A stretch of DNA of 64,000 bases, from positions 20,629,700 through 20,693,699 of the forward strand of contig OZ037768.1 in assembly GCA_964035545.1 (NCBI GenBank), read 5' to 3'. The notes below the pieces were generated by a model. It was not told the DNA's origin, ran no database searches, and saw only the letters and a list, made by a program, of their open reading frames with translations. This document shows, piece after piece, positions 26,862 through 32,800 of this stretch (the stretch's first letter is position 1; every line of letters begins with the position of its first letter). Source of the DNA: Bugula neritina. Its lineage: Eukaryota > Animalia > Bryozoa. Both the position numbers and the translations under genes were made by a program.

Positions 26862-29800
26862 TTATTGCTGTGGGTAACTATGCTTATTATTCTCGTGGTC
26901 TCTCAGCTTTCTATAGAAACTTTGTACGTAGGTGAAAACACATTTCCAGTCAGGTTTCTTCATCCGTACCATATCTTCCACGTCAAGCAATGGGGCTATG
27001 TCTGCCTTCTGTCTGTAAAATACGGCATACCACTAATAGAAGTAGTCATTGATGGTCACATAAACAAATATCAAGTATCAGAATATCCGTAGTAGGTGGG
27101 ACCAAATAGGAATTTCCACTAATATATTTTGTATTATAACAAAAAATCATTATTTACTCTAGCCATTTAAAGTTTATCTTTGTATTTACACTGAGTAGTT
27201 ATATTAGGAAAGTGAGCTGAAATATGACATTCAATCAACAAAATGAGAAAAGTTTTATTTTTCAAATGGGTTGCATTTTAAAAAATAAAGCAGCTGCTTC
27301 CAAAGAAGGTAAATGCTATTATAATTACTCTGCTAAATCAAAAGCCAGCTGAAAGTTTTCTCTCCTTCTTCGCTCATCAACTTTGTCCCACGAAAAGGAG
27401 TCGGGATAGAAATGATGAATAAGGGCCAAAAAGGCGAGTCCATTGCTCCAGCTTGTAGAAAAGTTGTCTATCTTGACATTCTAGATTGATTCAGCATAAC
27501 TAGACATTACAATCTGTACAATTTGATAAATTATATAAGCATGAAATGGATAGACCTTCAACACATTTTCTGTCACCAATATTCAAGTCTCATGACAAAT
27601 AACATAATTTTGTAATTCCGCTTTACTTTGATTCCAACCTAATAATATATTTACTAATAAAAAGAAGGTAAATTAACTTTTAGCTACATATACATACATG
27701 TTTAGTTGTCAATAGATTAGCAAACACAAAGAAGCACAAAAAGCCATAAAATCTTGACAAGCACAAACAATGACTGCAGGCAAATTTAAAAGCTGTGTAT
27801 AATCAAGTGGGCAGACAACCCCTTTACATGCAGGAAAAGGCTTCTATTATTAAGTAGGGTTAGGGTTAAGTTAATTAAACTGCAATGCCCATGTGATTTG
27901 ATAGATGTTGCTAACTATGATTTTTACAAAAATTGAATTTTTGACCAATACCAAAATTCACATGAACATAGCAGCCAGTCATGTGGTGTTTTTAGGTAGA
28001 TTAGGTGCAGGGTACCTCATACTCCACTGTTTTAGATTTACACCAATCTAGGAGTATTTGTTTAATAGCAGTAGCACTACGCCGTACTCCAGGTCCAGAA
28101 GTTGTCCCACCTCGTGTAATGCTATGATAGAGAGTAATTAATGCATGATGACATCAGTAAGCAAGTGGTTAGCACATACAAACAGCACTACATATGTATT
28201 ATATAACTAGGCTGCCTTGACTACAATTGACTGCAATATAAACGATTTATTATTTTGAGTAAAATGGCTTGAAACTTTAATAATTTCAGATCTCATACAT
28301 TCACTATTTTTATATTAATCAATTGTTTCTGTCAAAAGCTTTCCAATGGCATATTATCACTAAATTGTGATATTGTAATATTGCAATTTTTATACTTCCA
28401 TTTCACGAAAAATGTTGTTCAAGTCAGCCTGGCTATACACAACAATATACTGAACGAAGACATCACCCAGCATAAAAACAAAATGTCACAAGACTGAACA
28501 ATATACTGTGTATGAAAGTTATGAGTAGCTGTAGACAACACAATGCAGACATCACAAAATAAAATATAACAAAATTTATTATGTCGAGACAACTCCGATT
28601 TGACCTCATCACACACCATATGAAACTAATGCACAACCTGCCCCACAATACAGTAGCCACCCGGCTAACGCATTGTCCTACAAACTATATAAAACGACAA
28701 AGTAGTAGTTGATGTACGTAAACATGCAAGCCAGCAGTCCCAAACCATCCCAGACCAGCGACAAGACAGAGAGTTGGTTTCCAGACACCACAAAGAGGTG
28801 TGCTGAGAGAGTTTACAACAATTGGCAAAACGAGGGTACCAAAACATTCTGAACAGCACACAAATTTGGCAGGCTGTTATTAAACTCGGTACATCAAAAG
28901 TGCAACCAGCACACTACAGTGGTCTGCGTCTTACAACGTTAAACACCCATAGGTTTCTGTTTATATTGCTCAGGTTTTTTTATTTTACAAATTTGTTCAT
29001 TTATATAATAAAACAATTGATTACAAACATTAACTTGAGAGTTGATTACAAGCAACGAGATTGCAATAACATCTAATGCCAGTTCCATAAAGACAGCAAT
29101 TTAAAAACAGAAAACCGGAGGGTGGCAAAACAAATTTGCATGCGTGCTGTTCAGTTGTTTACCTCATATTCTCTAGTCATGAGCTGACACCAGCGTAGCA
29201 GACTTTCTACTACGCTGGGTTGTCCACCCTTGCCGCCCGATGTAAACCTTCAACACACACAAGAAGAATTTATTCGTGTCAAACTGGTCAATTGTGGAAA
29301 TCTTTCTAACGAGACCACAACTTGATTCCAGATTGCTTATTTTTCATCTTGAAGAAATTGAAATGCTTACACACATACTTTGATGGAATTGGGAGTTTTT
29401 AGTGCTTCGTTTGACTATACTCAAATAATACTAAAAACATTCCAAATTAAATTTCAATGATAACACTCAACTTATAACATAGTTTTCGTCAATATGTCAT
29501 TTTCTAATATACTATTCCTTTAATTTACATAAAAAGGTCAACCAAAGGTTAACAAGTTCAAAAATAAAGTTGAACTGACTAGCTCTACTTCATTTGCTAA
29601 ACAAATAAGGGTTGTTGTATGCATTTCAATATCCAATCCAACTTTTTGAGCTATTAAGCTACTTTATTTTTAGAAGCAGAATTTCTAGATGCAGTGATAG
29701 AGCCACCCCTTGCTGAGCTGTTATTTCTAAGGAAACAGGGCACCCCATATGGGTGAAGTAGTTAGTTGAATTTAACAGACAGTTGGCACTAATAGCTGAC

Positions 29801-32800
29801 GACAAGACGAGCGGACAAGCGAGTCACCTCGTATTCGTCCGTATTCGCTTTACAAAATGATAACATCTCCTGCTTTATTTCAACAATTCCCATGGCTCGA
29901 CGTTTGATCATTTTAGCAGCTTGTTTAGCTGCCGGAATGGATTTGAACGACACTGCTGCCGCACCACTAAATAATGCACAAGAATTATAACAAAATCAAG
30001 AACGGCACAAGTCACATCACAACCGTCACTCGGCTAATGAAAACTCTATGAAATGCTAGAATCTAATGCTCAAATACAAGTATACCTCGTACTCTGCTGT
30101 GTTGTTTTTGACAAAATTAAAAATCTCTTCAACATTCTTACTCATCCGAATCTGAATACTGAAAGACAGGGAGTGGAGACTAAAATACACTTTAGCAACA
30201 TCAAAATACTAATGCTGCTGTAAAAATAGTCTGCAATTTACTGCTAAAGAACTCTAAAATTAAACTTGGCAAAAAAATCGTTTCTACAACCAGTGAATAA
30301 TAACTAACAGCATTGTGGGAAGAGTTGTATCATATACCAACACTGTAGAGAGCTCATTGTATCATGTATGTTGAAACTCGAAAGCACTGATAATACTAAA
30401 ATAGGCTGGTAGTGAAAGTTTAAAGATCATAATATAAACATGAACACTATAGTAGAAGGGGTCTAATTAGTATATTGAGCTATTGCTATTATATAACTGA
30501 CAATTAACATTGTAATTATTAATCCTAGTACTAGATCTCTAAAAGCAGATGAATAGAAACAACATTCATTAATTAGTGCCTACATCTCCTGGTTATGTGT
30601 AAATCATTGCACTTCCACTCAAAACATCAGCAAAAGCCTTTAGTCCTAAGTATAACAGGGCTACTGCAGGAGAGGGGGCCTCACAAATTCCCGCATTATT
30701 ACAACATTTCACGTCGTGCCAACACATCACTTCTAAGCCGCAATTATTCAAACATATGAAGTCAGAAAAAAACCTGATCCCTAGTTGAAGGCCAAATAAA
30801 ATTATTTTCTAGTTTGAAGAAAATGATAAAACTAAAAAAATACCATGCAGTAAATAAATAAATAAATAAACATATATATATATATATATATGTGTGTGTG
30901 TGTGTATATATATGTGTGTGTGTGTGTATATATATGTGTGTGTGTATATATAATTATATGTGTGTGTGTGTGTATATATATATATATATATATATATATA
31001 TATATATATATATATATATATATATATATATATATATATATATATATATATATATATATATATATTACAAGTATGTGTAAAACATACCAGACCCAAAACA
31101 CAATCTACACTGATACCATTTGCAAGCTTCATGAAGTTTTGAAAATTGTAGTCCATTTAGAAGGCATGACACTGACTTTAGAATAAGTTCCTTAGCTTAG
31201 ACTTACTTGGGTTTAGGGGCAGAGGCTGAAGATGGGTTGTTAGCATTGTCCATCTGCTTGAATGCTGCCATGGCACCTCTAGCACCAGTAGGTGCTGCTT
31301 TACCTAAATATTATGTAATATATATGTAATAAATAAGTAATATATCGGTAATGGATATGTAATAGATATATAGGATATATGTAATAGATCTGTAATAAAT
31401 ATATGCAATGAGCTTAGCATAATATTATCTCAGTAACTTACAACAACATTAAATTCACATGTCAAATAGAATGAAGTAAAGATGAGTTACAAATATGATA
31501 AAATTATTATTTTATCATATTCATGTTATATCTTGAGGGTTATGGAGTGCCAATTCATAGAGGGTCACCCAATTGCATTCAGTTTAAAATAGATTACTTG
31601 TTATGCATAGCATTTTAATATGCTTAAAGTAATGCCTCTGCAATAAATTTGTTTGCCTCAATAAGTAAGTATTTTAAAATGAACTATTGCGAATCGAAGG
31701 GGGGAGGGTTTCATTTGTTTTATAAAAAGTGTGAGAGGTTGAGCACGAGGAATGGTAAATGTTGACACAACAGGCTCTAAAGTTCAGCAGAAAACAATTT
31801 GGGGATGCAGCAACATTTCTACTACGATTAAAATACACTGCAGGTTTGAAAAGCAAGAAAGTCTCAGACACAACCCAATTGCATAAAAAATTACAGACGA
31901 TGCAGTATTCAGCATGACACGTGCAGAAGTTACTCAAATGATGTTTAATATGCAGCAATACAAGTTTTGTAAGGAAACCTATTATATCTGGGCATTTAAA
32001 GTAATTATCTGTGACCATGGAGATATAACCGCCATCTTACCAAACAGTGTTGACAAAGCCCCTGTGTTACCCCAAGATTTATTTGCAGTTGTCTGTTTGT
32101 GCTGCACGTTGCCCGCAGTGTTACTCTTCCACGTCTGGTTTACCAGCACGCTGCCAGACGTGTTTGGCTTCGATAACCTCCTTAGCAGAGAATTTGCCAT
32201 ATTTTCTGCAGAAACTATAAACACACACAGCTACCATGCAGAGGAGGAGGGGCACATCACGGCTCTTGAAAATTTGAAATGATGCAAACTTTATTCCACA
32301 CACAAAAATTTGCGCTAAAATCTCCAGCAGGTGGGAAAGAAAGAGGCAGAAAAAGTAAAATCTAGTAAATTTGGAGGGAATTTCACACTCAACACTCAAA
32401 GTATATCAACAAATATGCAGGGCAAAACAAGAAAACAAATGTTCACCACCATGCTTTGAAAAAAGAAAACTACAGACTGAGTCAAAGTGTACTTACCCCC
32501 GGGACGACTCATACCACTGGGTTTAGGAACAGCCTTTAAACCTGTATAGAAATACGTACCATAATACATTTACCTAAATATAATTTTATTCTAATTATTT
32601 GGTACTAAAGTATTTAAAAGTTATTATAATAAAATATAGTAATTTTCCCCATGATATTATTAGAACATAAGTATCTTACTTTTTATGCAAACTACGGCAT
32701 ATAAAATAAAACTGCTGAGACACCACTACATATGCTGAGATTGAGTACATTCTTTATAGCGATTAGTTGCATCAAAATAAAACTTTTTAAATTAAATAAT

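Follow-up and report, generated by a model that had tools for sequence, protein, structure and literature searches.

The bryozoan Bugula neritina carries, in a single-copy smoothelin-like gene, four tandem-duplicated exons (A to D, in their order along the gene) that are very probably spliced either-or, swapping the calponin homology (CH) domain's first helix (helix A). The gene lies on the minus strand of a stretch of 64,000 nucleotides (nt) of contig OZ037768.1 (assembly GCA_964035545.1, forward-strand positions 20,629,700 to 20,693,699), which we call the window and whose first nucleotide is position 1. Each mRNA would take one of the four exons between a constitutive upstream exon and a constant exon, with the chosen exon supplying the linker and the whole of helix A and the remainder of the domain staying constant (Table 1). 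An earlier note, made from the sequence alone, had proposed such a mutually exclusive cluster. The proposal is borne out by the RNA joints from single alternative exons to the constant exon, none of them doubled, by purifying selection on the exons in three species and by the design of the reading frame.

The exon cluster and its transcripts

The four exons share one design. Each is bounded by an AG acceptor and a GT donor, requires a single leading base, has a length of 1 mod 3 and ends in E-Y-E. Reading, translation and scripted splice sites reproduced exactly the coordinates, lengths, phase, splice sites and four peptides given in the earlier note. The pattern E-Y-E followed by GT occurs at four sites on the minus strand of the window, all of them the ends of exons A to D, and at two plus-strand sites elsewhere, a clustering far above chance expectation. 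The peptides align over their last ~17 residues, in which T, E, Y and E are invariant, and nucleotide identity among the exon tails is 41-57%. The helix-A part is equal in length in all four, and the overall range of 73-139 nt comes with an N-terminal linker that varies. Exons A and B have Phe at the position of the Trp of exons C and D; these are the two replacements of the conserved Trp that had been noticed before. Among homologues with the complete region, Trp stands at this position in 144 of 173 and Phe in only four. Exon D is the form nearest to the smoothelins of other animals in a comparison with 40 named homologues. The earlier statement that none of the exons appears among the listed open reading frames needs a small correction: at a threshold of 40 amino acids, the minus strand has two mechanical frames, 29789-29953 and 30056-30190, with in-frame overlap of exons B and A, respectively.

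The reading frame leaves little room for other combinations. If no alternative exon is included, the constant exon reads M-S-R-stop, and a second alternative exon, read from its first base, has stops in every case, as the frame logic of the earlier note had it. Since skipping all four exons or including two of them leads to a premature stop, single inclusion alone is productive. These stops lie well upstream of the last junction, and such mRNAs should therefore undergo nonsense-mediated decay.

What is swapped is helix A, as had been claimed. The constant exon corresponds to CH positions 22-72, which leaves the beginning of the domain to be provided by the variable exons. Structure and Pfam work was done on natural orthologous proteins. 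In these, the Pfam match covers CH positions 4-108 and begins inside the variable exon, which accounts for positions 4-21. In an AlphaFold model (predicted local distance difference test score, pLDDT, of 87), the first helix spans residues 11-38, all within the variable exon, and the constant exon starts at residue 43; confidence is low (pLDDT about 54) for the helix segment that falls in the conserved basic extension. The Phe-type domain of Liolophura aligns to the structures of human smoothelin (2D87, E 4e-42) and SMTNL1 (2JV9) from I-K-x-x-x-L-D-F onward.

Spliced RNA is available for all four exons. We used RNA contigs from four runs of four independent public studies, placed on positions 26500-30850, a stretch that stops short of the upstream exon; 17 public runs contain part of the region. 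All RNA joints show GT..AG ends on the gene strand. The junctions that the earlier note had proposed to look for, from each exon donor to position 27480, were seen for every exon, in all four runs for D and C, in three for B and in two for A (Table 1). Contigs joining two alternative exons were absent from the four runs, as judged from assembled contigs, which drop rare forms. Unitig ends coincide exactly with the limits of exons B, C and D. On the acceptor side, the end of the upstream exon is attached as a loose end at 28121 (exon D, three runs) and near 29247 (exon C, one run), and for exons A and B the evidence consists of unitigs that end at the acceptor. The loose end is the reverse complement of the upstream exon end and differs from it at three of 30 bases, all synonymous, which fits allelic or strain variation. 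Low-depth unspliced contigs run across exon A. The contig depth of exon B is at least that of exons C and D in three runs. Run X8, which bears a symbiont-metagenome label and is the sole run recorded as RNA-Seq, has spliced C and D and no contig for A or B; this may reflect tissue-specific use, as a hint only, and is the sole one bearing on the muscle- or stage-specific use that the earlier note had thought probable.

One contig of run X2 has the upstream exon end attached at 29250 rather than 29247. Exon C would then be preceded by three additional in-frame bases, coding for one more Arg, at a place where the genome has no AG; the contig may represent an allele with a tandem acceptor, or an artefact of alignment. 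A (TA)n/(CA)n microsatellite of 212 nt (30854-31065) lies in the intron that separates exon A from the upstream exon, and the stretch chosen for the contigs ends short of it.

The gene itself runs from at least 44115 down to 26865, and pieces of the Watersipora subatra orthologue map on the window from 44115 to 26868 (tblastn). Besides smoothelin motifs, this smoothelin-like gene encodes two Ig I-set domains and, at the C-terminal end, a type-2 CH domain; it is assigned to the smoothelin family on the combination of this CH domain with PF12510 upstream. A second PF12510 copy, at 42249-42344, scores 21.5 bits and is under the cut-off of 23. The match of orthologues to 2D87, a smoothelin CH structure, has an E of 4e-42. 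In a library of 1.8 billion proteins, the best match is XP_067932720.1, a smoothelin-like protein of W. subatra that is 90% identical in the constant exon; other matches are at most 72% identical there, except one 86%-identical fragment. The CH exon is present once in the 216-Mb genome, where the nearest other CH exons do not exceed 63% identity over 27 residues, and the gene is single-copy. Among the top-scoring library matches, the proteins P0001, P0002, P0003 and P0006 are long and have an unusual architecture of 7-9 tandem smoothelin-type CH domains.

Table 1. Features of the smoothelin-like gene, its alternative exons, the RNA joints and the elements near them (positions in the window)
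Feature	Position	Strand	Description
Upstream constitutive exon	31303-31207	minus	97 nt; two spare bases ('aa') at its end, next exon must give one; splice sites by eye and script
Conserved intronic element before exon A	30488-30520	minus	19-nt exact match to Watersipora intron and nearby 7-mer
Alternative exon A	30158-30086	minus	73 nt; short Phe-type helix A, without N-terminal extension
Alternative exon B	29966-29828	minus	139 nt; Phe-type helix A after conserved basic extension; ancient 'F-type'
UG-rich 3' splice-site region of exon C	29248-29262	minus	U-G-U-G-U-U-[G/A]-A-A-G before the exon; weak acceptor
Alternative exon C	29247-29163	minus	85 nt; Trp-type helix A without basic R-S-x-S motif
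RNA stem, 5' arm	29154-29141	minus	begins 9 nt after exon C donor; inverted repeat I16
RNA stem, 3' arm	28862-28849	minus	C-D intron, 278 nt downstream of 5' arm
Alternative exon D	28121-28016	minus	106 nt; canonical Trp-type helix A, lead-in R-R-S-A-T-A-I-K-Q
Constant CH exon	27480-27329	minus	152 nt; phase 0 at its start; positions 22-72 of the Pfam CH profile (PF00307, E 4e-12)
Last coding exon	27012-26865	minus	148 nt; end of CH domain; stop codon 26865-26867
RNA joint, exon A	30086 to 27480		2/4 runs (X1, X4), depths 7 and 24
RNA joint, exon B	29828 to 27480		3/4 runs (X1, X2, X4)
RNA joint, exon C	29163 to 27480		4/4 runs
RNA joint, exon D	28016 to 27480		4/4 runs
RNA joint, constant exon to last exon	27329 to 27012		3/4 runs
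N-terminal and other upstream exons	44115..36013	minus	tblastn of Watersipora P0004 on the window
Smoothelin-domain exons	42249-42344, 40587-40664	minus	PF12510, 34.7 bits at 40587-40664 (cut-off 23)
Ig I-set exons	37157-37408, 36013-36180	minus	PF07679

Conservation and age of the alternative exons

The cluster is conserved in two further bryozoan-like species. The W. subatra locus has all four exons in the same order (64, 136, 82 and 103 nt), with lengths of 1 mod 3 and AG/GT sites kept, and all four are also present and in phase (67, 136, 79 and 118 nt) in a third species, represented by a 14.5-kb contig of a metagenome assembly (L012). Between the window and Watersipora, blastn aligns the exons, at 76-85% nucleotide identity, and not the introns. 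The upstream constitutive exon has 81% amino acid identity to Watersipora, and exon B has 78-81% in the two other bryozoan-like species. The proportions of nonsynonymous (pN) and synonymous (pS) differences from Watersipora are 0.12-0.23 and 0.62-0.92 in the alternative exons, with synonymous sites saturated; exon A has a pN of 0.16 and a pS of 0.62, and the constitutive exons have a pN of 0.07-0.14. As pN is far below pS in each alternative exon, all four are under purifying selection. A tree built from the 22-residue cores joins the window copies of A, B and C to their Watersipora counterparts at 98-100% support and groups the D copies among the Trp-type exons; the deeper branches are weak, with few columns. 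Together with the same exon order in L012, this pairing places the origin of the four exons before the divergence of the three sampled species. The single annotated Watersipora model (P0004) uses exon C only.

The distinction between Phe-type and Trp-type exons extends beyond bryozoans. A search in other invertebrate smoothelins, which the earlier note had suggested, recovered the pair in Patella, Liolophura, Capitella and Lingula. At the corresponding position, the Patella caerulea locus (L002) contains a set of three homologous exons, of which one is Phe-type (86713-86817) and two are Trp-type; the Phe-type exon is intact and missing from the four models examined, in which the Trp-type exons alternate. 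In Capitella teleta (L008), an unannotated intact Phe-type exon in the right phase (~5295-5385) precedes the annotated Trp-type exon. The same Phe/Trp alternative separates isoforms X3/X5 from X1 in Lingula anatina and X2 from X3-X5 in Liolophura sinensis, and the one model retrieved from Elysia crispata is Phe-type. A hidden Markov model of the Phe-type exon, derived from exon B, scores 60-76 bits at the loci of Patella, Watersipora, L012 and Capitella. No Phe-type exon was found at those of Lytechinus, Limulus and Schistosoma, where the profile picks up a single Trp-type exon only; a weak Phe-type-like match in Limulus (L010 10382-10429) was rejected for its wrong phase and upstream stop. 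A region-restricted protein search for further Phe-type exons returned the query alone.

On this distribution, the Phe/Trp pair goes back at least to the shared ancestor of Bryozoa, Mollusca, Annelida and Brachiopoda, and the two-version switch is probably over 500 million years old. The pair would thus be older than the split of these groups, and its expansion to four exons would have taken place in bryozoans, ahead of the divergence of the three sampled species. In the EukProt data, a complete animal-type smoothelin-like protein (P0019) is filed under Siedleckia nematoides, an apicomplexan parasite of polychaetes; it has an annelid/mollusc-like upstream motif and a Trp-type exon, and is probably host contamination of the Siedleckia transcriptome.

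Exon choice and competing explanations

How a single exon might be chosen was examined against the mechanisms known from other clusters. The earlier note had compared the cluster with Dscam; the comparison holds for the exon architecture but not for the docking-site/selector RNA mechanism, which was sought and not found. No direct-repeat family with at least three copies, and none common to the four exons, was detected in the search for docking and selector sites. The only intronic stretch that blastn aligns between the window and the Watersipora genome is a 19-mer before exon A (30506-30488, identical to L001 43148-43166). Its complementarity to the cluster is no better than that of shuffled versions, in the window and in Watersipora, so that it shows no docking-site behaviour, and a selector system of the Dscam exon 6 type was rejected on these two results. 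Steric hindrance was rejected on the lengths of the A-B, B-C and C-D introns (119, 580 and 1041 nt here, with an A-B intron of about 440 and 350 nt in Watersipora and L012), and U2/U12 spliceosome incompatibility was rejected on the donors GTATAC, GTGACT, GTAAAC and GTACCC, in which no U12 donor box was seen by eye. An Rbfox-type GCAUG was also considered as a regulator and set aside: one copy lies in the stem arm after exon C here, and it is absent at that position in Watersipora.

Signs of regulation are seen at exon C. A conserved stem of 12-14 bp in the three species has its start 9-12 nt past the donor of this exon and its partner site about 255-290 nt further downstream. The duplex energies are -24.9 (window), -25.6 (Watersipora) and -22.8 kcal/mol (L012), against -18.2 +/- 2.3 kcal/mol for the shuffled element in the window; shuffles match the stem energy in one of 100 cases in the window and in none of 100 in each of the other two. 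RNAalifold recovers 13 stem pairs unaided; 11 pairs are shared by all three species, and in three both sides have changed, e.g., A-U to U-A at two adjacent pairs. Before exon C, the blastn alignment extends 15 nt into the intron, unlike at the other exon borders, and the UG-rich motif is also found in Watersipora and L012. The donors of exons B and D are conserved and non-consensus. The stem may be a regulatory structure for the use of the exon C donor. Trans-acting factors, in combination with local RNA structure, would probably determine which exon is taken; exon C has both the conserved weak UG-rich acceptor and the stem, which closes a loop of about 255-290 nt.

In a different explanation, the exons are picked independently as weak cassettes and nonsense-mediated decay leaves the single-inclusion mRNAs, with exclusivity arising elsewhere than at the splicing step. 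We regard this as unlikely, though well short of negligible. It would draw on the early stops in all wrong combinations, the failure to find a docking/selector system, introns (119-1041 nt) that make steric blocking unlikely and the conserved non-consensus donors of B and D; yet no contig with two alternative exons appears in the four runs, even though low-level unspliced precursors do, and active regulation is suggested by the conserved stem and the UG-rich acceptor of exon C. Several points also weigh against either-or splicing as such. No splicing-level mechanism enforcing exclusivity was found among those examined (docking/selector, steric, U12); double inclusion could be missed in contigs and usage is unquantifiable from them; and for three of the four runs the RNA origin is a guess, though the spliced joints themselves argue for it. 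The weakest case is exon A, which is spliced in two runs only and at low depth, did not have its acceptor junction directly observed, as the stretch covered stops short of the upstream exon, and does not keep the terminal E-Y-E in the other two species (D-E and H-F-E).

The state of exon A, together with the absence of A and B from run X8, could be taken to mean that functional protein comes from the Trp-type exons C and D only, with A and perhaps B being splicing noise or decaying duplicates. This is very improbable: A and B keep their frames, phase and splice sites in three species with unalignable introns, their pN is far under pS, the conservation of B-like exons extends to molluscs, an annelid and a brachiopod, with use in annotated isoforms there, and B equals or exceeds C and D in contig depth in three runs. 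The earlier note had named, as the result that would speak against it, a single exon spliced with the others not conserved; all four are spliced and conserved. It is harder still to credit that the spliced contigs derive from paralogous genes or from another organism in the samples. Many contigs are just 95-99% identical to the window, and the loose end has its three differences in 30 bases, but the latter are all synonymous, the genome holds one copy with no close relative among its CH exons (at most 63% identity) and intron-containing contigs of the same runs match the locus. A paralogous origin was rejected for this single-copy gene. Either-or splicing of the four exons within one gene remains the explanation that we hold with high confidence.

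Elsewhere in the window, an ankyrin-repeat exon (56797-57129, minus strand) lies upstream of the smoothelin-like gene and presumably belongs to a neighbouring gene. A GC-rich block at 1-4300 (53-57% GC, compared with about 33% elsewhere) contains long plus-strand open reading frames at 23-2641 and 3245-4318.

Variant function and relation to known systems

Smoothelins serve as markers of contractile smooth muscle, and the ligand of their single CH domain is still debated. The four variants differ around this domain in ways that can be read from the alignment. The basic R-S-x-S-x-I-K lead-in, common to most animal smoothelins, is kept in D and lost in C; exon B has the conserved basic extension, and exon A has neither the extension nor the R-S-x-S lead-in. 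SMTNL1 depends on its CH domain for F-actin localisation and tropomyosin binding (PMC7240100, PMC5359911), and the apo-calmodulin site (residues 439-457) sits at the CH domain's C-terminal end, with the Ca-calmodulin site upstream at 310-325 (PMC5359911). We considered helix A as the carrier of the SMTNL1 IQ motif and rejected this, as the calmodulin sites are placed elsewhere (PMC5359911). Because the core Trp gives way to Phe in A and B, a conserved basic helical extension is present in B, and R-S-x-S is kept in D but lacking in C, the variants may differ in binding by the CH domain and its lead-in, with F-actin, tropomyosin, calmodulin-type partners and kinases as candidates.

Judged by the criteria for tandem exons of Pillmann et al. 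2011 (PMC3228551) and Kassiopeia (PMC3923563), the cluster resembles those of Drosophila Dscam1, Mhc and 14-3-3 zeta: homologous exons lie side by side in one intron, share their phase, keep their splice sites and are probably used one per transcript, and the swapped piece is a defined structural element of a domain. Unlike the Dscam type, it has no detected docking-site/selector complementarity, its exons differ by up to 66 nt in length because the N-terminal linker varies, and exclusivity is backed by the frame (1 mod 3), as in pairs policed by nonsense-mediated decay. The stem at exon C is akin to the 'RNA bridges' and stems known from the vicinity of regulated splice sites, in that it pairs distant intronic segments, is conserved through compensatory changes and adjoins a regulated 5' splice site; one pairing was found rather than a competing set, and its effect on choice is putative.

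Vertebrate SMTN and SMTNL1 (2D87, 2JV9/2K3S) share the C-terminal type-2 CH domain and PF12510, and exon D resembles the vertebrate lead-in and helix A. Alternative splicing of vertebrate smoothelins, however, has been described for other exons, with a regulated cassette exon (PMC5062968) and an entry of the Protein Data Bank (PDB) named 'splice isoform L2', and the bryozoan and mollusc genes also have Ig I-set domains, unlike vertebrate smoothelins. The cluster also has relatives in the models of Lingula, Liolophura and Patella (KAK6191500-503), which have the same intron position, phase and Phe versus Trp alternatives; those models are automatic and have two or three exons, whereas the bryozoan cluster has four, each with RNA support. 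Our literature search found nothing linking smoothelin to mutually exclusive exons or to Lophotrochozoa, and SMTN is absent from the supplements of the human catalogue of mutually exclusive exons. The smoothelin switch is so far visible only as unremarked isoform models in sequence databases.

A broader reading, possible but still doubtful, is that a Phe/Trp switch more than 500 million years old operates throughout the lophotrochozoans, giving one smoothelin gene two CH forms, and four in bryozoans, that differ in partners or regulation, with the bryozoan choice steered by the exon C stem. If so, the form with the basic extension and the form with the kinase site, for example, would be used in different muscle or cell types.

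The list of mutually exclusive exon clusters outside arthropods and vertebrates is, to our knowledge, still small, and the present one adds a well-supported and deeply conserved case. The gene models examined miss such exons: the Watersipora model is C-type only, and those of Patella and Capitella are without the Phe-type exon. The conserved RNA stem offers a testable handle on exon choice. For the smoothelin family, up to four first helices on a constant CH domain, kept for hundreds of millions of years, constitute a natural variant set suited to asking what helix A and its lead-in give to the binding of F-actin, tropomyosin and calmodulin.

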